From positions 9,362,001 to 9,426,000 of the forward strand of contig CM035350.1 of assembly GCA_020137815.1 (NCBI GenBank): 64,000 bases of DNA, written 5' to 3'. Both the position numbers and the translations under genes were made by a program. This DNA comes from Hormiphora californensis. Lineage: Eukaryota; Animalia; Ctenophora. Positions 23,051 to 54,272 of this stretch are shown one piece after another (the stretch's first letter is position 1; each line of letters opens with the position of its first letter). The notes beneath the pieces are model-generated. The model made no database searches, was not told the DNA's origin, and saw only the letters and a list, made by a program, of their open reading frames with translations.

Positions 23051-24115
23051 AGAGAGAGATAGAGGATAGAGAGAGAGAGAGAGCAGAGAGAGAGAGAGAG
23101 AGAGAGGAGAGAGAAGAGAGAAGAGAGAGACGAGAGGAGATAGAAAGAGAGAGAGAAGAGAGGGGGGTTGTTGCGGGGGAGTGAGGACGATAGCTACCAA
23201 ATCTGTCAGGCCAATGCTCTGACCACGGTTCTCGTGTGCGTTTGAAATAAATGAGAATAGGGTCAGGCCAATGCTCTGACAGTTGTCAAAGAAGGAAATG
23301 TGTAATACCTTTACTCTTCTAGCACACTGTTCCACGAAAGAGGATACACATGGTACGTGTTCCTACGACCTCAGAACTAACTACAACGTCCCATTCCCCC
23401 TCCACGTCTTCAACCATGCCACATCTGTACTCCAAATCCAAGACTGGAGAAGGTAGAGTGTGTGGTAACATAGAGATGGGAAATAATGCATTATTACCCC
23501 ATTATAATGGTCTAAAAAAGTTCAAAATTGATAGAAATCACTAATCAGAAACCCAAAACATGGGCACATTTACCTGTCGGTGACAGTGCGGCATGTGCCC
23601 GTGCAATCCTTATCATCTCCTTGCTAGGATCCACCCCGGTTACACTCAGATCACCCTCTCGTGCGAGGAACTCTGCCAGATACCCTCCTCCACACCCAAC
23701 ATCCAGGACAGTACCTCCCCCTCCACCTCCAACCAGGGACCTCACTAAAGGAACACGGAGTTGGTTCATGAGCAGCAAGGGGTCCTTGTCATCTCTCCAC
23801 CACTCGGACGAGAGTTCCTCGAATTTTTCAACTTCTAGCTCATCCCTCCTGTTGGGGAGATGTTATTAATTGGGGCGGGGAGGTTAGCCAGAGTTGTTTT
23901 GATATTCAAAAACATTGGACCTTCCACTAGCTGGATACAGCTGGATATACTACCAGGAAGCTTCCAGAAGGATCACTGGTCGCACTGGAGTTTAATTCAC
24001 GTGCGAGGGTTCTTTCTAGTAGGGTTCTGTATTTAAAGATCTATACTCACATGGGAGAGGAAGAGAGGAGGCGGGAGCAGGCCTTCAATCTTGGGATCCG
24101 TCTCAAACATAACAT
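22493..24115 (-). CDS. COQ3: Ubiquinone biosynthesis O-methyltransferase COQ3 (UbiG family), mitochondrial; 5 exons
   Basis: Arg-rich presequence (24051-24115), then EVEKFEELSSEWW...LMNQLRVP, the SAM motif VLDVGCGGG, SEVVEHV (1-nt frameshift near 23363), PGGGLMFTTINRT...PGTHEYHK and GMRYNPLT...VNYA. Confidence 0.92.
23203..23282. mobile_element. Micro-element made of two direct copies of GTCAGGCCAATGCTCTGAC (copy 1, COQ3 intron)
   Basis: ctgtcag...ctgacag termini. A second copy lies at 35849-35917. Confidence 0.7.
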
Positions 24116-24442
24116 TTTCTAGAATGATCTAGGAGGAGTATCAGTTCAGAATATCTCACACAGACTCTGTCTGAACCTCTCTCAATCCCTCTCTTTCTGT
24201 CTATTGTGAACTTTAGTTCAATAGGTAGGGATGGAGAGGCAGGATTTAGGGAAAGGAGGTATCAGGAAGATCAAGGGGGGGTATGACACATTTATAAAAC
24301 ACGTTCTAGCAAAACTATACAAACCAATAAAATGTACGTATAAATTATTACGAGTCAAATAGTATTCTCTAAAATGATATATATGAAAAAAGAACCGTCA
24401 TAGTAAAACTTGTGTATATAATAATAGAGTTTGTTAGATGTT

Positions 24443-27400
24443 TCAAACTTGAGTAGAGGACCCAGACTTGGCTGGTTTCAGACCAGGTTTAGCTCCCCTG
24501 GATGCTGGACCACTGAGTCTTGGTGCAGCGGCTGCCTTGTTACTCAACCTTCCAGAGCTACCACTGCTTGCTGTACTGATAATACTGGGAGGTAATGTTA
24601 CCATGGTTACATAGTTGGGAGCAAGAAGTGACCCAATTTAGATCAAGTGAAATGGGATTGCAATGCTAATTGCTAGTGAGATATTCAAATCAAGTCTAAC
24701 TAAGTGGGAAGGGTCCATAAAATATGTCCAGGGGAGGTTCTCACCTTGAGGAGGCGAGGGGTTTCCGGGATATCTCTTTAGGTTTCACTGCAGCTGGTTT
24801 ACTAACAGGTTTACTAACAGGTGCGGTGATTGCCCCAGCACCAGGTGGTCTTCCCTCGTGTGGCGGGGGTGGGGGATGCTGCTCCCCCTCTGCACCCTCT
24901 CTCCCCTCCTCCATCATGAGGGTAGCCCGCTCCACGATATCAGGGTTCTGCTCCATCAGTTTAGCGTAGAACTCGTTGGGATCGAGACGGTTCAGTAGGT
25001 AGGAGAGGTGGTGTTCTGAGGCTGCACGGGATATCGTCTGGATCTGGGGGAGAGGGAGGTGTTAGTGAGTTACCTGAACTAACCAAACAGTAATAATAAT
25101 TTTCAGATGCCATGGTAACCATGGTAATCACTAATCATGGTAACCATGGTAACAACTCACGTTGATCAGTAGCTGGACAGTTAGAAGGGTAAAGTTGCTA
25201 TCAAAGGTCTTGATCATCTCCTCGAACCCGACCTCTTGGTGCATCCTCATGTTCTCCTCCGCTTGACTGGGTATAGAGACGGTAGCAGAGGGAATTAGCC
25301 TCATCATCGCATTACTAAAGGTAACACAGATAGCCTGGAGTTTAGCAAGGCACCTCAACAGTTCAGGGGTGGTCAGGAGGCAGTCCTTGAGACATGTTTC
25401 CAGGAAATCGTTGTGGATTTGGAGGACGTTATCAATCGTCTGGACACTTTTCATGCCCTCCAGGAAGAGGTGCCACTGCCGCTCAATAACCTCGAACATG
25501 GCATAGTAACTGTAGTTACTAATGAAACTTAGCATCCTCTGTCGGAGACAAAAAGCCGCCGCGTGCCACTTGGTGGTGTAGATGGGCTGCCATTTGGCTT
25601 GTTTGTGGGCTTGCCACACAGCACACAGCTGTCTCTCAACGTGCTTACAGTGGAACAAGTGCCGGAACAGGAGCTGGTATTTTGTAATGGCCTTCCGGGA
25701 TACTACTAGCGATACCGGCCACTCCACCTGGAAGAATGGTGGTTGTGTGTGGGTAGAGGTGATGAGATCTAGGGGTATATAATAGGAATTAGGGGCTGAG
25801 GATGCAAAGTATGCATGTTACTGCAGCATACTGAGTATCTAAAAGCTCTGTTAATCTTACCCTGTAATCCAGTGTGAAGGCTTCAACCCCAGTGAGACCT
25901 GAGGCATGAGGCTCAAATGCAGGGTAAACCTGCTCGCTAGGACCCAGAAGATGTCCTCGCACGTTGATGATCCTAAACAACTGGGTAATCAGATCATACG
26001 GGACAATATCTACTTTCAGGTCCTCTTTAAAGGGGTCAGATGCAGCGACACTGGTCCTAACCGCCAGGTCCAGGAGAGATTCAATACGAGATAGGACAAT
26101 GTCATCGTGTTTCTTTCGGAGTTCCTGGTCTGCCATATCCATAAAGTGGACAAACACGTCACCCTGTGGTGAAATGGGAGAGGGATTAGAAGGATATATC
26201 ACCCTGGAGAGGAATGGGAGAGGGTTTAGAAGGATATATCACCCTGGAGAGGAATGGGAGGAGGTTTAGAAGGATTTATAAAGCCCCGTGAAAGCACATT
26301 TTGCCATGAAGTCGGTTGACAATAGTAGACAATATTATAATTATTGCTAGTGCATTAATTTACCTGTCCCATGAGGAAGAAGCTCTTGATGCTCGATAAC
26401 CGGTCCATCAACCTGTGTTCCTCTAACAGCAAATCGAGCAACCTCCGAGCGGCAAAGGAGTATGCAGTCTCTATGCACTCTGTATACTTCCTTTCCACCA
26501 GTGTATACCTTATCTCGGTACTAGTCAGGACATTGGACGTTGTAGCCACACTGCCTGATTACGTTTAGGTACTTTCCCGTGTGGAGGACCTTGTCAGGAA
26601 AACTTCTTGAGGAACACCGGTACCTTTAGGAAGGGGAAAGTAATTAGTAACTATGTAGTTAGAAACTAATTGGTAGAAACTAATTCACGAGATGGCTGCA
26701 AAAAGAAGAAAAAAGGGCCAGAAGAATAATACCTGGTAATTGTTTAGACTGTATCTAAGGTACCTGGTGAATTGTTTAGACTGTATCTAAGGTACCTGGT
26801 GATTGTTTAGACTGTATCTAAGGTACCTGGTGATTGTTTAGACTGTATCTAAGGTACCTGGTGATTGTTTAGACTGTATCTAAGGTACCTGGTGATTGTT
26901 TAGACTGTATCTAAGGTACCTGGTGATTGTTTAGACTGTATCTAAGGTACCTGGTGATTGTTTAGACTGTATCTAAGGTACCTGGTGATTGTTTAGACTG
27001 TATCTAAGGTACCTGGTGATTGTTTAGACTGTATCTAAGGTACCTGGTGATTGTTTAGACTGTATCTAAGGTACCTGGTGATTGTTTAGACTGTATCTAA
27101 GGTACCTGGTGATTGTTTAGACTGTATCTAAGGTACCTGGTGATTGTTTAGACTGTATCTAAGGTACCTGGTGATTGTTTAGACTGTATCTAAGGTACCT
27201 GGTGATTGTTTAGACTGTATCTAAGGTACCTGGTGATTGTTTAGACTGTATCTAAGGTACCTGGTGATTGTTTAGACTGTATCTAAGGTACCTGGTGATT
27301 GTTTAGACTGTATCTAAGGTACCTGGTGATTGTTTAGACTGTATCTAAGGTACCTGGTGATTGTTTAGACTGTATCTAAGGTACCTGGTGATTGTTTAGA

Positions 27401-30400
27401 CTGTATCTAAGGTACCTGGTGATTGTTTAGACTGTATCTAAGGTACCTGGTGATTGTTTAGACTGTATCTAAGGTACCTGGTGATTGTTTAGACTGTATC
27501 TAAGGTACCTGGTGATTGTTTAGACTGTATCTAAGGTACCTGGTGATTGTTTAGACTGTATCTAAGGTACCTGGTGATTGTTTAGACTGTATCTAAGGTA
27601 CCTGGTGATTGTTTAGACTGTATCTAAGGTACCTGGTGATTGTTTAGACTGTATCTAAGGTACCTGGTGATTGTTTAGACTGTATCTAAGGTACCTGGTG
27701 ATTGTTTAGACTGTATCTAAGGTACCTGGTGATTGTTTAGACTGTATCTAAGGTACCTGGTGATTGTTTAGACTGTATCTAAGGTACCTGGTGATTGTTT
27801 AGACTGTATCTAAGGTACCTGGTGATTGTTTAGACTGTATCTAAGGTACCTGGTGATTGTTTAGACTGTATCTAAGGTACCTGGTGATTGTTTAGACTGT
27901 ATCTAAGGTACCTGGTGATTGTTTAGACTGTATCTAAGGTACCTGGTGATTGTTTAGACTGTATCTAAGGTACCTGGTGATTGTTTAGACTGTATCTAAG
28001 GTACCTGGTGATTGTTTAGACTGTATCTAAGGTACCTGGTGATTGTTTAGACTGTATCTAAGGTACCTGGTGATTGTTTAGACTGTATCTAAGGTACCTG
28101 GTGATTGTTTAGACTGTATCTAAGGTACCTGGTGATTGTTTAGACTGTATCTAAGGTACCTGGTGATTGTTTAGACTGTATCTAAGGTACCTGGTGATTG
28201 TTTAGACTGTATCTAAGGTACCTGGTGATTGTTTAGACTGTATCTAAGGTACCTGGTGATTGTTTAGACTGTATCTAAGGTACCTGGTGATTGTTTAGAC
28301 TGTATCTAAGGTACCTGGTGATTGTTTAGACTGTATCTAAGGTACCTGGTGATTGTTTAGACTGTATCTAAGGTACCTGGTGATTGTTTAGACTGTATCT
28401 AAGGTACCTGGTGATTGTTTAGACTGTATCTAAGGTACCTGGTGATTGTTTAGACTGTATCTAAGGTACCTGGTGATTGTTTAGACTGTATCTAAGGTAC
28501 CTGGTGATTGTTTAGACTGTATCTAAGGTACCTGGTGATTGTTTAGACTGTATCTAAGGTACCTGGTGATTGTTTAGACTGTATCTAAGGTACCTGGTGA
28601 TTGTTTAGACTGTATCTAAGGTACCTGGTGATTGTTTAGACTGTATCTAAGGTACCTGGTGATTGTTTAGACTGTATCTAAGGTACCTGGTGATTGTTTA
28701 GACTGTATCTAAGGTACCTGGTGATTGTTTAGACTGTATCTAAGGTACCTGGTGATTGTTTAGACTGTATCTAAGGTACCTGGTGATTGTTTAGACTGTA
28801 TCTAAGGTACCTGGTGATTGTTTAGACTGTATCTAAGGTACCTGGTGATTGTTTAGACTGTATCTAAGGTACCTGGTGATTGTTTAGACTGTATCTAAGG
28901 TACCTGGTGATTGTTTAGACTGTATCTAAGGTACCTGGTGATTGTTTAGACTGTATCTAAGGTACCTGGTGATTGTTTAGACTGTATCTAAGGTACCTGG
29001 TGATTGTTTAGACTGTATCTAAGGTACCTGGTGATTGTTTAGACTGTATCTAAGGTACCTGGTGATTGTTTAGACTGTATCTAAGGTACCTGGTGATTGT
29101 TTAGACTGTATCTAAGGTACCTGGTGATTGTTTAGACTGTATCTAAGGTACCTGGTGATTAGTTTAGACTGTATCTAAGGTACCTGGTGATTGTTTAGAC
29201 TGTATCTAAGGTACCTGGTGATTGTTTAGACTGTATCTAAGGTACCTGGTGATTGTTTAGACTGTATCTAAGGTACCTGGTGATTGTTTAGACTGTATCT
29301 AAGGTACCTGGTGATTGTTTATACTGTATCTAAGGTACCTGATAATTGTTTAGACTGTATCTAAGGTACCTGGTGATTGTTTAGACTGTATCTAAGGTAC
29401 CTGGTGATTGTTTAGACTGTATCTAAGGTACCTGGTGATTGTTTAGACTGTATCTAAGGTACCTGGTGATTATTTAGACTGTATCTAAGGTACCTGGTGA
29501 TTGTTTAGACTGTATCTAAGGTACCTGGTGATTGTTTAGACTGTATCTAAGGTACCTGGTGATTGTTTAGACTGTATCTAAGGTACCTGGTGATTGTTTA
29601 TACTGTATCTAAGGTACCTGGTGATTGTTTATACTGTATCTAAGGTACCTGGTGATTGTTTAGACTGTATCTAAGGTACCTGGTGATTGTTTAGACTGTA
29701 TCTAATGTACCTGGTGATTGTTTAGACTGTATCTAAGGTACCTGGTGATTGTTTAGACTGTATCTAAGGTACCTGATAATTGTTTAGACTGTATCTAAGG
29801 TACCTGGTGATTGTTTAGACTGTATCTAATGTACCTGGTGATTGTTTAGACTGTATCTAAGGTACCTGGTGATTGTTTAGACTGTATCTAAGGTACCTGG
29901 TGATTGTTTAGACTGTATCTAAGGTACCTGGTGATTGTTTAGACTGTATCTAAGGTACCTGGTGATTGTTTAGACTGTATCTAAGGTACCTGGTGATTGT
30001 TTAGACTGTATCTAAGGTACCTGGTGATTATTTAGACTGTATCTCTTCTCCCAGTATGTATCGTATACCACCTCATACTTTCTCTGAACCTGCTCCAACA
30101 CACTCCCGTCTGCAAATTCCTCCACAAAAAACTCCCCAGATGGGTCATCGATAATACCTGAAGAAGAAAGAGATTATCAATCCATTCTAAGATACAAATG
30201 AACAATAAAGCTACAAAAAAGAGAGAAATCAATACAAGTGGATCATGATAAACAATCAAAACACACAGCTGGAGAAAATCAATAAAAGTGACCACAATGG
30301 ACATAGAAGATGTACCTTTGTAAAGCCATTTTTCCAACATCCCAAAGTATGGAACACACGCAGCCTGTGTGAGGTAGAGACACAGGTCCTGTGAGGAGGG

Positions 30401-33400
30401 CTCCCCCACGTGCGAGTAGGTCTTCTCGTGAAGGAGAGACAGTGTTGTTCCCCCTCGACAGTTACCGTTTATAACATCTCTACACACAGTCGCCAGCACC
30501 TGTCACAATGATAGGGGGTGTTTGACAAGTCACTCAAGTCTAGATCATACATAATTCTCGGAACACAGCGGCAGTAATCAATGCCGGGCAGTAAGCTGTA
30601 GGAAGTCAGTGTGCAATGGAAATCTTTAAAAGATAATCCCCGCTCAGAATCTTACGTAGAAGGTGTTGATACAAGGCTGGATAAATAGCCACATTTTCTG
30701 AAGGCTGAGCTGTCCAAATGAGTACTGCTCCTCAAGCTGCGCCACCAGAATGATATACTCCTTCACCTAGAGAAGGATGATGACAATATATTAAGATAAG
30801 ATATATACCAAGCCGGGGATACCCTCCCCGTTCTTTCAACCCCCCGTGGCCCGCTTGTATATCGGTCTCTCCACATATCTCCCCTCCCTCCCTCCCTTTT
30901 TCAACCGTACCCCCATAGCCCCCCCCCCCCCTGGTATATCTCTATCTACGCTACCACTTACCAGAGTTTTAATGGCGGCACAAAGGGCCTGGTTGACCGT
31001 CCCTGATACGTATCTAGCGCTGTGGTCCAGGAACCTACTAACAATGGAGTAGCAGGAACACAGGGGCAGTATCTTGCTGACCAATCCCGCTAACCCTGCA
31101 TCCAGGCCAGTCTGAGTGGGAGGGAGATAGTGGATTTAGTTGTACACAGGTTAGGAAGTTATTAGAATTAATGTTTTGTTAAACCGAGAAGAATTTTGGT
31201 TCTTTTTATGTTTTGTATGACGTCTGTACGCTGTGTAGGCAGAAGGGGTTTGGTCCATACGATGAGCTCTCTAATCCCATTAATGTGTTTTCAGTTGCGT
31301 AGATATCTCTCAGAGAAAGAGAGAGTTTCCGAACATGTGTTTTCAATTGCCAGAGTTTCTAGCGCGACTAATGCCCTCTGTTTCTATCTATATTGGATAT
31401 AGAGACTAGAGAGAGAGTCTGTTCAACACCTTGCTCTCTCTCCATCATTTCCGGGTCATTTCCCTTTCTTGTTGTGTTTTATGGATCTCCCATTTCCATT
31501 CTAGCTCAGATAGAACGATTAGCGTTAACGGGGCGTTAACCGGTCTGACTATTAATAGTTTTATTCCCCCTTTCGAGTTGTTCTTCTTGTGTTCAGTTTT
31601 ATTGGTCTCCAACTTTTCCTTTCTAGCCCAGATAGACCGATTAGCGTCTAACCAATATTTGTATTTCCCTGTTAGCAGTATTTCCCCTGTTAGCAGTATT
31701 TCCCCTGTTAGCAGTATTTCCCCTGTTAGCAGTTTGAAAAACATCCGCGAGTGATGGTTCCTAGATACCTTATTCTTGCCATTGTACTGACTTCAACATA
31801 TGCAACATTGCCCCCGACAGGTGAGAGTAAACATAATTTCAAACAACCTCTGCTAACCAGAATCTTGATTCATCAGATATTGTTACAACACTGTGTATTT
31901 CAGAATGGGCGGACGTGGTGAGAAATGTGCCAATTGGGCCAATGTCAGATACCATCCCGATTGAAATTGAACAGGAAAACAATGAGAGGATGTCTGTTCG
32001 ATTGTATCATGGGTATTTGGGTATAAAAGATAGCAATGAATATTCGATATATAAGTGTACTGGAAAAAATTATAACTTTGTGAAATTTCCAAATGTTGAC
32101 GACATTCCCTCGAGCTCTGGCAAGCTTTGGAGATTTACCAAAAGTGCAGAAATGCTGGATATTCGTTGCAATGGTACCGTTGTGTTGGAGTTTAGGTTCG
32201 ACGACAGTGGCCATAATCCCAATTGTACGGACCTATGGTCAGGTGACCACTCCAACAAATGGGGGGTGCGACATGTTAATTTTGTTAACTTTGTTAATAT
32301 TAACATCGAGAAAACAGGTGATTTATTAACAAAATTAACAAAAAGTTAACAAACGTTAACAAATGCCATTTATGCCATCTCAATCCCCTTTAGCACGTGT
32401 TTTTGGTATTTAACACTTGTTCTGCAAGCAAAGTTGTTCCTTCTGCACGATTTGCATACCCCTACTACCCCCACTACGGCTTTTCTACCGTTTCTACAGC
32501 GATTTGTTCCATTGTGTAAATTTTGATAAAAACTAGCCAAACTAAACCGCAATTGAAGTCAAAAGACCCTAATCCACATTTTCAAACCCTAAAAACAAAA
32601 TAAGACTTATGAATCTACCTTAACACGAAAAATATCCCAAAAATCAATTTTTCTAAAAAAACACAAGGATTTGTAGCGAAGCAAATTTTCAATCGTTGAC
32701 CAAAAAATTGATTTTGGAAATATTGTATTTCTTTTTCCAACAGAAACGTTGTAAATCATCTTCCTAAGTCCAAAGAATCGATTACCAATTTAAAAATTAC
32801 GTTAAAGTGAGATTTTATACGCTAAATTGAAATATTAGTAACTTTTGGATTTTTATCGATTTTGAGCCAAAAACCCTGTATGGCGGACTTTGGTTATCGG
32901 GGGAGGCCTTGCTTGGGTATAAATGTGTTAGAGAAGTCGTTAAACTATAAAATTAAACCAGTTAAAGTCGTATTATTAACCAATAAGAACAGTCTTTTAG
33001 CATTTGTTAATTTTGTTAATTTTGTTAATTAACGTTAATTAACAAAATCGAAAAAAAGAGGTGATTTATTAACAATTAACATGTCGCCCCCCCCCCAACA
33101 AATACATTACTTTTAACAATAACACTAAAGATTCATCGAAACGGTACCGAGGTGAGAAAAATTACAAATCCCCGTCCCCCACCCTCCCTCCCTCTGTTCT
33201 TAATTGGATATTAGTACTGCAAAATCGTTGTTTCTCGCCCCCCACCTTCCCGCCATGAACTAAACTGATACATTTTCATATATATCCATGTGTTTCAGTT
33301 GTAGCGTGTCCACCACCATCCATCTCTAACAACATGGTCCACACGGGAGGTACTACCATCTACCCAGTTGGAGGGACATTGCAGGTTGGCTATCAGCCAG

Positions 33401-34020
33401 GGTGGAGGAGTCTGAATGGGGTTCAGACGATCACCTGTACTGAGGGCAGACAGTGGTCCAAGGAGAGGCCACAGTGCTACAAAGGTACGACATTGAGATG
33501 ACTAGGTTCATGAAATTTCATTTAAACAGTCTTGAATGCAGAATCAAATAACTAAGATATAATATATTCATTCAAAATGTGTGTGCAATAAAGGCTGCCG
33601 GCTGGTAGGTATTGAGTGTTCACTGCTCCGACTACTCTCTCAACATACATGTTAGAGATTTAAAGTTTGCTCAAGGTGGTATAACCCGAATATATTGTTG
33701 TTCTGTTTGTCTGTCAGTTAAAAACAGTTTAGTTATTAATAAAGGGGTTATAATTTACCAGTGGTTTGAAGCGGCGGTGAGCGAAGGGAGTATCCAGGGG
33801 TTCAACTTGTATAAACAATCCCTCAACGCCAACCAGAAGGTAGAGGAGGTCTTCAACCATTGCATTCTCTTGCTGTGGGAGGATTAGTTTGTAGTGAGGG
33901 AGAGAAAGAGAGAGATAGAGAGAGAAGGAGAGAAAATCTTTGTCTTTGAGTTGGGCGTGTCCCGGTAACAACAAGCTCTTGTGGCCTAGTTTGGCTGGAA
34001 CCCGGGGTTGGAACACACAG

Positions 34021-34101
<81 letters not shown>

Positions 34102-36090
34102 GGGGGGGATAGTAACATGTCCGACTACATAATGGTCAGTGGTCACTCCGTCATGAGAAAGAAAAATTTAAATCCTTCTCTCCCACACACACATAAAATA
34201 AAAATGTCAGCATTTCACTCTTAGAAACAAATCAACAAACAAAATTGTTTTTTGGATCGACGACAAAATTGTTTTTGAGATCGACTAACACTTTTCTTCG
34301 CGTGCAATGTGTGGGTAAGTAAGGAAGATCGCAAACAAACAAACAAACAAACAAACAGACAAACAAACAAACAAACAAAAACAAACAAACAAACAAAAAC
34401 AAACAAACAAAAACAAAAAGACAGACAAACAAACGAACAAACAAACAAACAGACAAACAAACATACACACAAACAAACAAACAAACAAACAGACAAACAA
34501 ACAAACATTAAACAAACAAACAAACAAACAAACAAACACACACAAACAGACACACACACACACACACACACAAACAAACAAACAGACAGACAGACAAACA
34601 AACAAACAAACATTAAACAAACAAACAAACAAACAAACAAACAAACAAACAAACAAACATTAAACACACACAAACAAACAAACATTACACACACACACAC
34701 ACAAACAAACAAACAAACATTAAACACACACACACACACAATTAAACAAATAAACCTGAAGGGCCGTCATGAGATGCAGTGGTTGAGTCTGGTATGATGA
34801 TTCCTGTTCCGTGATAACAAAATCTCTGGACAGCATGGGCCGACTGACAATGGCTGGCAGTTTTCTGTTCTGATATTTCAGTTTCTGCTCCTCGCTTGCC
34901 CTCACCACTGCCAGCTGGGTTCTCACCTCCTCAACCTCTCTCTGAGAAAGTGCCCTGGGGGAATCAATGATCATGTGCTAGAGAGATCATGAGAGGGTTG
35001 GATTTGGATACGAAGGTCAAGTAGTCTTATAAAATGTAAACGACTCGTACTGGAAGGACAACTCAATGGTTAGGGAACTATGGTTACTATGGTTACCGTG
35101 GAATAGTTTCCAGTACGAGATCGGATGCTTTCAAGTCTGAAGCGGAGACACCTTCCCTTCCCAACATTTCCAGATAGTCCAGCGTTCTGGGGTCCTCGAC
35201 ACACTGCAAAATAAATGAACTTTTTAGTGTCATGATCATCGGTATTTAGACTACCTAACTTCGTAACAAGTTACCAATAGTTTACAATTCTGAGCTTACA
35301 AGTTGCTGCAATTTTTTGGCACGACAATTACCTTCCCAAGGAAGTATGCAAATGGATCCAGCTCATATAACTGTTTAGTTTTTAGAGAGGTGTAAGTTCT
35401 CCTGAACTCAGCGGGGTCACGTCCCTGTTCCTGGGCATGCTTGCACAGCTTATTCTTGGCCGTGTGGACTGACGCCTAGTGTTAGAACATGGTGTTAGAA
35501 CATGGTGTTAGAACATGTTAGAACATGTTAGAACATGTTAGGGCCCTCCTCCTGGGCATGCTTACACAGCTTATTCTTGGCCGTGTGAACTGACGCCTAG
35601 AACAGGGATGGATGGTGTTAGGGATGGTGTTAGGGATGGTGTTAGGACATGGTGTTAGAACATGTTAGAACATGTTAGAACAGGGATGGATGGTGTTAGG
35701 CTTCTAACTCAGGTAACCAATTGGGCTAGTATTGAATCCAGTAAAGTGTAATAGAATAAATACATCTACCCCTTTTAGTCGTCCAGGTCTAGTAGAACAA
35801 GTACATGTCTACACTGTTACAAGTAGTTATACTCGAGGCGGGCACGAGCTGTCAGGCCAATGCTCTGACCACAGTTCTCGCGCGCTCCGAGAATGGGTCA
35901 GGCCAATGCTCTGACAGGGCACGAGAAAGTCTACTGTCTGTATTAAAACTCCAGGGGTTACCTGGGAAACGATGAAGTTGGAGGAGGATTGTCGAAAGAG
36001 GTCCTCTGCAAAACTCTCTGGAGGGAGGTCTGATCCGAGGGCTGAGAGGAGCTGCGAGGTCAAGTGGTGAACCTTGTACTCGCTTTGCAT
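24443..36090 (-). CDS. TUBGCP2: Gamma-tubulin complex component 2; about 14 exons
   Basis: N-terminus MQSEYKVHHLTSQLL, then QENAMVEDLLYLLVGVEG, YWEKRYSL..QVPVFL..DKVLHTGKYLNVIRQCG, QGDVFVHFMD, LTGVEAFTLDYRVEWPVSLV.SRKAITKYQLLFRHLFHCKHVERQL. Approximate exons: 35962-36090, 35332-35475, 35098-35203, 34756-34977, 33759-33884, 30961-31111, 30656-30766, 30316-30499, 30021-30158, 26364-26623, 25861-26163, 25161-25727, 24745-25044, 24443-24585. Confidence 0.95.
26159..26277. repeat. 40-bp x3 minisatellite containing the TUBGCP2 acceptor and the first exon bases
   Basis: Unit tcaccctggagaggaatgggagagggtttagaaggatata. On the sense strand each copy reads ...CAG|GGTGA, as at the true acceptor (26163). 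Confidence 0.85.
26731..30044. repeat. 31-bp minisatellite, about 107 near-perfect copies, derived from a TUBGCP2 exon end plus donor
   Basis: Unit ggtacctggtgattgtttagactgtatctaa; sense strand AGATACAGTCTAAACAATCACCAG|GTACCTT. The first 24 nt match the exon end encoding RYSLNNHQ. Confidence 0.98.
31754..33501 (+). pseudogene. Nested antisense gene in a TUBGCP2 intron: secreted protein (signal peptide, ~135 aa beta-rich domain, Sushi/CCP domain) disrupted by a transposon
   Basis: Exons 31754-31820 (MVPRYLILAIVLTSTYA), 31904-33151 (interrupted at 32261-33103) and 33299-33501 (CPPP...YPVG..LQVGYQPGW...ITC..GRQWS..RPQC). Splice phases are consistent. Confidence 0.8.
32261..33094. mobile_element. 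Non-autonomous DNA transposon, ~830 bp, with 8-9 bp TSD (Mutator-like or hAT-like)
   Basis: TIR gggggg(t)gcgacatgttaatt / aattaacatgtcgcccccccc, with ccaacaaat duplicated on both sides. Removing the element restores the reading frame (HSNK|YITFNNNTKDSSKRYR). Confidence 0.9.
34331..34750. repeat. (CAAA)n/(CA)n compound microsatellite
   Basis: Visible directly. It produces the spurious FVCL and KQTN ORFs. Confidence 0.95.
35476..35700. repeat. Partial duplicate of TUBGCP2 exon 2 (acceptor plus ~55 nt) embedded in tgttagaaca/ggtgttaggga repeats
   Basis: 35542-35596 aligns to 35421-35475 with 5 substitutions. Confidence 0.85.
35849..35917. mobile_element. 69-bp micro-transposon with 8-bp TSD (copy 2, TUBGCP2 intron 1)
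   Basis: ggcacgag|ctgtcaggccaatgctctgacc...ggtcaggccaatgctctgacag|ggcacgag. Confidence 0.85.
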
Positions 36091-36405
36091 CCTAAATGTG
36101 GGGAGAGCGTTATAGATCCTAGTAACTAGAAGTATGGGGGAGATTTAGAGCAAGATTTGGGAGGTGAAACGACAAATGGTTCAGTAGGAAGGGGGACAGA
36201 GCAATCAAACGAAATGAAATTTACCATGATGGTCGCGTGAACGCAATACAAAACTCAGTACACACAATAATTTAACTTCACTCCGCTAAGAGTCCTTTCT
36301 CTTTTCCAATTCCCTTCTCTCTCCCGATACTAATTACATCACAACCTCATTATTTCTCTAGTGATGTTTGATGATGTTTGAGACATCAGTAAAGAACTCC
36401 CTCCC

Positions 36406-36513
36406 CAGGAACCGACCGGCACAAGTAAACAACCAATCAGAGCTCGTTATTTAGGTCACGTGACTGGTTATCAGCCAATCAGGGACCAGTATTTCCTGAT
36501 TCGGTCGGTTCCT
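36406..36513. mobile_element. ~108-bp MITE between two 58-bp direct repeats of the NDUFA8 3' end
   Basis: TIR aggaaccgacc / ggtcggttcct. Direct repeats at 36345-36402 and 36511-36568. Confidence 0.85.
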
Positions 36514-36523
36514 CATTATTTCT

Positions 36524-37249
36524 CTAGTGATGTTTGATGATGTTTGAGACATCAGTAAAGAACTCCCTAGCAGACTCCCCCCAAGTCTGCATCCGGGAGA
36601 ATGGCTTGTCCTGGTACCATGTGAAGTCTCGTGCTATGTTCATCTTCTCCAGCATACACTGGTCAAATTCAACCTGGGTCTCTCTACAGTACTCAAACCT
36701 GGGGGAGGGGGTTATAGGGATATTTAGTGGAGAGGAATCAAGATCCCATCAAGATCCCATCAAGATTCATCAAATTTGATTGTTGATAAAATCCTCCCAA
36801 AATCCTATATCCCGATTGTTACAAATTAATTACTTTCTTCCAGAGAGATCGATACAAGTGGCATGCCGAGCGAGGGGCATCTTGCACTTCTCGTAAACCT
36901 GGTCCATGAACAGTTTAGTACAGTTGGTAACAACCTGACCCTCTCTGAGGCACTGTCTGGGGTCTCCACCGCTGTCAGTCCGGCACAACATGAACCTATC
37001 ATTGGCATCCTTACAGGCCTGCAAATATACAGATTATTGGCATGGGTGGAAATGTTCATGGGGAAGATTTGAAGGGCCACCGTGATATTTGAGAAGGGAT
37101 TTGTGGTTATTAAAAAAACGGAAAGGGAGGTTGTATAGGTGGGGGCTAACCTGTCCTAGGTGGTCGGCTGCCGCCATTATGGGTACAGTTGTTACATTAT
37201 AATCCTTGTAGTTGTCTAGTTCCTCCCAAGGAATCTTCTCGCACGACAT
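36524..37249 (-). CDS. NDUFA8: NADH dehydrogenase 1 alpha subcomplex subunit 8 (CX9C protein); 3 exons
   Basis: NVTTVPIMAAADHLGQ|ACKDANDRFMLC...DPRQCLREGQVVTNC...CKMPLARHATC...|FEYCRETQVEFDQC contains four CX9C motifs. Confidence 0.92.
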
Positions 37250-42591: not shown

Positions 42592-43106
42592 GGGCGCCGT
42601 TACGATCTGGGTGTTTGGTGGCCTGTTTACAGGTGCGCGCTGCCAAAAAAGTTGATTCACTAAAACGGCTCTAACCGCCGAACCACTCAACCGTTTTGGC
42701 TAATTCAAAGTTTATCTGGTAGGGAATGTCAAGGCCTAACCCCAACCCAAACCCCAACCCTAACCCTAACCCTACTTTAGCCCTAACCCTAAAAAACCGT
42801 TTGTCAGCACTCACGAAACACCCAGATTTTAACGCTGGCCCGGAATTTTTGGCCAGCGTTAAAATCTGGGTGTTTTGGGAGTGCTGACAAACGGTTTTTT
42901 AGGGTTAGGGCTAAAGTAGGGTTAGGGTTAGGGTTGGGGTTTGGGTTGGGGTTAGGCATTGACATTCCTTACCAGATAAAATTTGAATCAGCCAAAACGG
43001 TTGAGTGGTTAGGACTTAGGCGGTTAGAGCCATTTTAGTGAATCAACTTTTTTGGCAGCGCGCACCTGTAAACAGGCCTCCAAACACCCAGATCGTAACG
43101 GCGCCC
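42592..43106. mobile_element. Foldback element with ~250-bp inverted arms containing telomere-like (CCCTAA)/(TTAGGG) tracts
   Basis: Arms mirror around a 10-nt loop (cggaattttt, 42841-42850). A third degenerate arm copy lies at about 43265-43370. An outer IR gataaggcagcacttttcaa / ttgaaaagcgctgccttatc lies at about 42040 and 43135. Confidence 0.8.

Positions 43107-46269: not shown

Positions 46270-54272
<8,003 letters not shown>

Follow-up and report, generated by a model that had tools for sequence, protein, structure and literature searches.

A minisatellite that probably arose across an exon-intron boundary repeats the donor of a GCP2 exon about 106 times within one intron of Hormiphora californensis

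What becomes of a gene when one of its 5' splice sites is repeated about one hundred times inside the intron that it opens? This question is raised by a 64,000-nucleotide stretch of the genome of the ctenophore Hormiphora californensis (assembly GCA_020137815.1, contig CM035350.1, positions 9,362,001 to 9,426,000; hereafter the window, to whose positions all coordinates refer unless another contig is named), in which an intron of the gene for gamma-tubulin complex component 2 (GCP2) contains a minisatellite built from the end of a coding exon. A first-pass annotation, made from the letters of the sequence alone, had seen in this array a candidate system for recursive splicing or intron expansion. 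Here, we consider it probable (about 0.8) that the element is an intronic minisatellite confined to this locus, with a first unit that lies across the exon-intron boundary, and through which the donor of a GCP2 exon has come to be repeated about 106 times in the intron.

The identity and the state of the host gene were addressed through its exons. The 198-amino acid exon at 25134-25727 matches GCP2 (7as4_A) with an E-value of 2e-57, vs 2.5e-12 for GCP3, and on this similarity the exons are identified as encoding GCP2. Searches with full-length GCP2 proteins (tblastn) placed the exons on the minus strand from approximately 33890 to approximately 24930, with splice sites set by eye and by motif. 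Exons were also searched singly; the 25134-25727 exon and the one designated here exon e were each found once in the genome, GCP2 being thus a single-copy gene. Exon e (137 nt, 30021-30157, minus strand; ...IIDDPSGEFF...YWEKRYSLNNHQ) was delimited by its translation, its splice sites and tblastn, and both of its boundaries are kept in relatives. The next exon, f (26364-26623, minus strand), comprises after correction 86 codons (VPVFLKKFSDKVLHTGKYLNV...FFLMGQ) that align with GCP2. As assembled, exon f displays two 1-nt frameshifts (26596/26597 and 26523/26524) and an in-frame stop; however, the extra letters at both positions are missing from every contig of three read runs, referred to as X1, X5 and X7. 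Because all read contigs of the three runs omit these letters, the frameshifts are assembly indel errors, and as both are errors of the long-read assembly, the GCP2 gene is intact. At 26609, also in exon f, the assembly differs from all of the X1 depth, by a synonymous change.

Tandem Repeats Finder delimited the minisatellite at 26730-30044 (minus strand; period 31, 106.9 copies, 99% matches), and a separate parse along the minus strand counted 107 units, 95 of which are identical to one another; the count of 107 is approximate, and two units of 32 nt possibly represent further indel errors. As the first-pass annotation had recognized, the 31-bp unit consists of the 24 terminal nt of the exon and a short addition (AGATACAGTCTAAACAATCACCAG + GTACCTT), with CAGGT present in every unit, a composition recovered from the sequence itself, from Tandem Repeats Finder and from the 107-unit parse. 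Unit 0 corresponds to the last 24 nt of exon e (30021-30044), reading AGATACAGTCTAAATAATCACCAG from 30044 to 30021; the exon text closes with ...TACTGGGAGAAGAGATACAGTCTAAATAATCACCAG at 30021 (minus strand), and is followed by GTACCTT and by the repeated 24 nt. Past unit 0 there are 106 CAG|GT sites, 105 of them reading CAG|GTAC. The last copy of the exon end is partial (26733-26756, minus strand) and is followed by a donor-like GTATTA; its junction, CAATTACCAG|GTATTATTC, runs into a non-repeated segment of 109 nt (26624-26732, minus strand), which starts with GTATTA and ends in a pyrimidine tract (pyrimidine fraction of 0.88) plus AAAG, the acceptor reading cctaaag|GTACCGG at 26623 on the minus strand.

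Variant units are confined to the 29 units nearest the exon and to the final two. The variable part of the array, units 1-28 (29145-30020, minus strand), includes 9 variant units, with unit 18 displaying the AAATAAT variant of the exon; according to the unit parse, it is followed by a homogeneous block (units 29-104; 26789-29144, minus strand) of 76 identical consecutive units, indicating a very recent expansion or homogenisation. Furthermore, the unit is confined to one locus, as a six-unit probe matched the whole 110.7-Mb assembly at 26 places, every one of them inside the array. The authentic, most upstream donor (CAG|GTACCT; 30015-30023, minus strand) is identical to the reiterated ones and agrees with the consensus CAGGTAAGT in 7 positions out of 9, the other donors of the gene matching at 6-8 of 9; judged by this consensus match, the pseudo-donors of the array are credible donor sites. 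With regard to RNA structure, the z value was unremarkable (-1.98) when the exon end and six complete units were folded together, and a Rfam scan of 24000-37000 returned zero RNA families. The palindrome AGGTACCT, to which the first-pass annotation had drawn attention, is indeed present in the unit, with no special structure shown.

The age of the intron was approached through relatives. A search with the open reading frame (ORF) that reads through the end of exon e matched eight ORFs from other assemblies (72-92% identity), and in all eight the conserved part ends with ...YWEKRYSLNxxQ|V, after which the sequences diverge (VSSQ, VGS, VGF, VRIN, VANCHIS, VFSRD). Since relatives end the exon at the same boundary, the position of the intron is old. 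Within the 7-39 codons visible, neither a V-P start (GTACC) nor a repeat of the exon end was found in any of the eight ORFs; the visible part of the intron in relatives, its first 20-120 nt, thus holds no array and has no GTACC start. As relatives share the boundary and lack the array just after it, the array represents the lineage-specific enlargement of a short intron that was already in place, and not an intron gain; the intron-gain route that had been suggested for the locus does not hold. The 109-nt tail is presumed to be this original intron, in agreement with the first-pass annotation: the other short introns of GCP2 measure 117-200 nt, and relatives have an intron at the exact position.

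With regard to the origin of the array, we propose a tandem duplication at the DNA level of 27 nt, made up of the final 24 exonic nt and the 3 nt (GTA) with which an old intron of approximately 109 nt begins, with 4 filler nucleotides (CCTT) added at the duplication joint, because the length of the array is exactly 106 x 31 + 27 nt. The 31-bp unit would then have been amplified via unequal exchange or replication slippage, and the run of 76 consecutive identical units suggests that the last burst of amplification was very recent. We infer no function for the array: the whole 3,397 nt would be removed as one intron, from the donor at 30020 to the old acceptor at 26624, the most upstream of the identical donors being presumably the one chosen, by analogy with the human genes F7 (intron 7, IVS7), CBS and IFI6. 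The frame past the first donor reads GTA CCT TAG (Val-Pro-stop), in keeping with the earlier observation that only this donor keeps the reading frame; use of a later donor would hence bring an early stop codon in frame, and the transcript would presumably be degraded. Taken together, the array is probably neutral.

A product that fits this proposal was found in X7, a seawater run labelled RNA-Seq, a label that is itself a guess. One of its contigs (record 20, 156 nt) opens with 71 nt from the upstream exon (...GAGGTGGTATACGATACATACTGGGAGAAG), continues with a single 24-nt exon end and passes into GTACCGGTG..., which belongs to exon f. The joint is of the GT..AG type, with 7 ambiguous letters, and the middle piece was placed on a repeat copy, the true exon end lying outside the region to which contigs were aligned. 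Exon searches found no intron-less copy of GCP2 in the genome, and therefore the contig represents spliced mRNA from which the whole 3,397-nt intron has been removed; in this one contig, the direct join of the exon end to exon f fits an mRNA made from the most upstream donor. The view that an essential gene tolerates about one hundred decoy donors is accordingly upheld: single-copy GCP2 carries about 106 reiterated donors, being intact in reads and represented by a correctly spliced RNA contig.

The presence of the array in reads was assessed in two of the runs, X1 (2019, possibly the sample that was assembled) and X5 (2025, from another sample and another study). In X1, contig depth on the repeat reaches 2,873, vs approximately 30 on the flanking exons (approximately 15 for haplotype-specific contigs), and in X5 it reaches 28,185, vs approximately 520 on the flanks; the resulting ratios of approximately 95-fold and 54-fold are rough, with a single depth value per contig, and the depth of a contig cannot be read as a copy number. 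The concern that raw reads might lack the array is dispelled by this excess of approximately 50-100-fold in two independent samples, from which it follows that the array is not an assembly artefact. The array itself is real, whereas depth does not fix the number of its units at 107. As far as contig depths go, the two ratios hint at a difference in copy number between individuals. Further, one X1 contig (record 8; 407 nt, depth 30.5, two-haplotype) spans 26360-26768 and connects exon f with the 109-nt segment and the last copies. Another X1 contig, diverging at 26717, was considered as an alternative haplotype and rejected, as it originates from G000:C12:904091 and has in common with the locus a C/T-rich stretch.

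In order to place the array in its genomic context, the 64-kb window was analysed together with twenty random 10-kb stretches (264 kb in total). This sample contains 163 non-redundant arrays of period of at least 10, the genome being very rich in minisatellites, and at least five of the arrays are anchored at a splice junction: the GCP2 array, two arrays in the random stretches (L030 and L028), and two located on the acceptor side. L030 (2554-4360 of its stretch; G000:C10:5002554-5004360) has a 34-bp unit in 53 copies, in which the final 31 nt of a mannosidase-like exon (...EHRYKDKLYTQ) are followed by GTA; its terminal copy reads CAA|GTAAAC and is followed by an intron of approximately 105 nt and by the next exon, GNYFPMPTMAFIQD... 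This is the architecture of the GCP2 array without the filler, and plainly a copy of genomic DNA. L028 (9331-9505; G000:C9:5009331-5009505) has a 41-bp unit in 4.3 copies, formed by an apparent exon end (…CAGCCCACAAG) plus GTTAGTAGG, and its end is marked by a 5-nt microhomology, GAGAG.

Both acceptor-side arrays lie within the window. The first occupies the next intron of GCP2 (26159-26279, minus strand; 40 bp x 3), and its unit, ...CTCTCCAG|GGTGA, comprises the acceptor and the first 5 nt of exon g; an X1 contig skips 78 nt here, and copy number thus differs between haplotypes. The second (50599-51321; 72 bp x 10) carries in each unit the 3'-terminal part of a cyclin D intron (…CCCGCTACTAG) joined to the initial 15 nt of the exon (GTTGAGTGTCCCGTC); after the last copy come the true cyclin D acceptor and the cyclin-box exon. 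Because L030, L028 and the two acceptor-side arrays contain genuine intron sequence, these sister arrays are DNA duplications.

Several points weigh against our interpretation of the GCP2 array. Read contigs were aligned over 25100-27040, the downstream side of the array, so that the exon-to-array joint at 30021 lies outside this region, and the copy number rests on rough depth ratios, without a read spanning the array. The evidence for splicing is a single assembled contig from seawater, of a guessed RNA type, and assembled RNA contigs are blind to the share of transcripts that come from later donors. The introns of relatives are visible only for the first 20-120 nt past the exon. Finally, CAGGT is present in 5 of 63 array units, vs 2.2 expected, a value reached in 22 of 300 shuffles.

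Some of these points bear on whether the repeated intronic donors are more than passive, either as products of a genome-wide, junction-directed mutation or as steps by which the spliceosome would remove the intron through internal CAG|GT sites. We regard this as unlikely; if either were true, the genome would be a natural system for the study of splice-site choice among up to approximately 100 identical donors. Under the former, a process such as breaks or template switching at splice sites, and not random duplication plus selection, would make the arrays, in line with the finding of at least five junction-anchored arrays in 264 kb, with the unit boundary right after GTA that is common to the GCP2 array and L030, and with the mild over-representation of CAGGT in array units. 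However, AGGT as a whole is not enriched, being found in 12 of 63 units vs 13.6 expected from shuffles, and junction-anchored arrays are a minority in the sample. Moreover, for introns of approximately 110-200 nt and units of 31-40 bp, approximately 40% of random duplications touching an intron were calculated to span a junction. Given a minisatellite-rich genome, short introns and this geometric share, the recurrence of junction arrays needs no special mechanism; the data are compatible with a slight junction bias beyond simple geometry, of modest weight, and a junction-directed process appears to us quite unlikely.

Recursive splicing, the main proposal of the first-pass annotation, would use the internal CAG|GT sites as combined acceptors and donors and remove the intron stepwise, as a ratchet. 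Recursive splice sites have a strong pyrimidine tract and a branch site before AG|GT, lie in very long introns and are kept across species. The array sites resemble the ratchet points of Drosophila and vertebrates in that AG directly adjoins GT in each unit. Also in favour of the proposal, the donor agrees with the consensus as well as the authentic one does (7 of 9 positions), and each step would regenerate the same exon end, leaving the mature mRNA without a trace. Unlike those ratchet points, the array sites lack a pyrimidine tract, lie in a short intron and are not conserved. They would make poor acceptors: the pyrimidine fraction from -20 to -4 is 0.47 before CACCAG| and 0.53 before CCTTAG|, vs 0.59-0.88 (median of 0.82) at nine real GCP2 acceptors; at 3,397 nt, the intron is far below the tens of kb of the long introns where recursion is known; and none of the eight relatives' ORFs shows a repeat of the exon end within the first 20-120 nt. 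Zero RNA intermediates were seen, although assembled contigs offer no fair test of them. These results speak against a ratchet, which we consider very unlikely.

The preferred reading, a duplication of DNA, also has to be weighed against the idea that the first unit was copied from spliced mRNA, joining the exon end to GTACC of the next exon, and was then amplified. In the assembly, GTACC of the unit does equal the first 5 nt of exon f, as had been pointed out, and none of the eight relatives' ORFs has an intron starting with V-P (GTACC). However, the start of exon f is polymorphic and reads GTGCC in X5, so that the identity stands for the assembly and not for that sample. Beyond the common GTA, the argument comes down to 2 nt (CC), and 5 of the 9 GCP2 exons examined begin with GT after AG. 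An equal or better match, the 10-mer CAGGTATTAT, occurs at the terminal donor (26726-26735) and where the acceptor of exon e meets the beginning of that exon (30151-30160), which is taken as chance and as a gauge of how weak an evidence short junction matches provide; in addition, the DNA at the acceptor of the array intron (26619-26626, plus strand: GGTACCTT) matches the unit motif over 8 nt in inverted orientation. Finally, the sister arrays are DNA-copied: L030 holds GTA of its own intron and not GGTAAC of its next exon, and L028 holds 9 nt of intron. The RNA-templated seed unit is consequently given very little chance.

That the array, or its length, is an artefact of long-read assembly could draw on the residual indel errors of the region and on the two array units of 32 nt, but repeat contigs at approximately 50-100 times the single-copy depth, in two samples of different years and studies, make this highly improbable. 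The reading of this GCP2 copy as a decaying pseudogene, in which the array would be harmless because the gene is no longer needed, is suggested by the two frameshifts and the in-frame stop of exon f in the assembly, and was rejected as scarcely credible, since both extra letters are missing from all read contigs of three runs and the corrected exon has 86 clean codons, while all other exons are open, no other copy of GCP2 was found in the genome, and spliced RNA exists (the X7 contig). For annotators, this means that residual 1-nt indels inside exons near such arrays mimic pseudogenes in this assembly.

Other features were observed in the window and in the sampled stretches. Inside the 2.6-kb GCP2 intron between the exons at 33759 and 31111, the plus strand holds a 144-amino acid ORF (31915-32349) that may be a nested gene or a remnant of a mobile element. 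Two inverted interstitial telomere-type repeats, (CCTAAC)x9.8 at 42735-42792 and (TTAGGG)x9.8 at 42899-42956, lie approximately 106 bp apart. Among the sampled stretches, L024 (1209-4973) contains a 35-bp unit in 108 copies that includes AAAG|GTAGGG, with no clear exon alongside, and L018 (2017-7167) a 457-bp unit in 11 copies. Multi-kilobase minisatellites are common in this genome.

The architecture of the GCP2 array has precedents in human genes, and hence it cannot be counted as new. In intron 7 of human F7, a variable number tandem repeat (VNTR) of 37 bp is present in 5-9 copies, with a first unit that spans the exon-intron boundary; its pseudo-sites are functional but silent, since the most upstream donor is chosen (Borensztajn et al., 2006; PMC1557585). 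The same source describes the CBS IVS13 VNTR, with 15-20 repeats, and intron 2 of the interferon-inducible gene 6-16 (IFI6), with 25 pseudo-sites, as well as LMNB2 and PDGF; in CBS and IFI6, splicing also takes place at the first or at the first two pseudo-sites (PMC1557585). Like F7 IVS7, the GCP2 intron has a boundary-spanning first unit and an authentic donor followed by identical pseudo-donors. In F7, only the most upstream donor appears in normal mRNA and copy number varies between alleles; for GCP2, one RNA contig agrees with this choice of donor. The two differ in scale, GCP2 having approximately 107 copies with 24 nt of exon per unit vs 5-9 copies with 4 nt of exon, and in host, which here is a small marine-animal genome with introns of approximately 110 nt. 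With CBS and IFI6, the GCP2 array has in common a boundary-spanning minisatellite that repeats the donor many times; unlike in those genes, any use of a GCP2 pseudo-site would be predicted to insert a stop (GTA CCT TAG).

A second comparison concerns the gain of introns by tandem duplication of an exon segment containing AGGT, known as the Rogers model (Hellsten et al., 2011, PMC3265369; potato RdRp, PMC4974935). The new intron of the model would extend from the GT of the first AGGT copy up to the AG of the second, at a site where relatives have none. In both cases, a duplication of AGGT adds splice sites, the duplicate is spliced out and the protein is unchanged. In GCP2, however, no new intron has been formed: relatives have an intron at the same position, the old acceptor at 26624 is used, and the intron has been enlarged approximately 30-fold, illustrating the growth of a short intron by that factor in one step. 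The GCP2 array is an extreme natural case, in which approximately 106 pseudo-donors match the real donor letter for letter across 31 nt or more, vs 4-25 pseudo-donors in the human examples, and in which an essential single-copy gene still yields correctly spliced mRNA, as seen in one RNA contig. Similar arrays recur in this small genome, one with 53 copies in a mannosidase-like gene and others, on the acceptor side, in GCP2 and cyclin D; given RNA data, the genome could therefore be used to examine whether the most upstream donor prevails as a rule. The GCP2 array is thus a far larger example, in a distant animal, of the known class of boundary-spanning minisatellites, and not a new splicing system.

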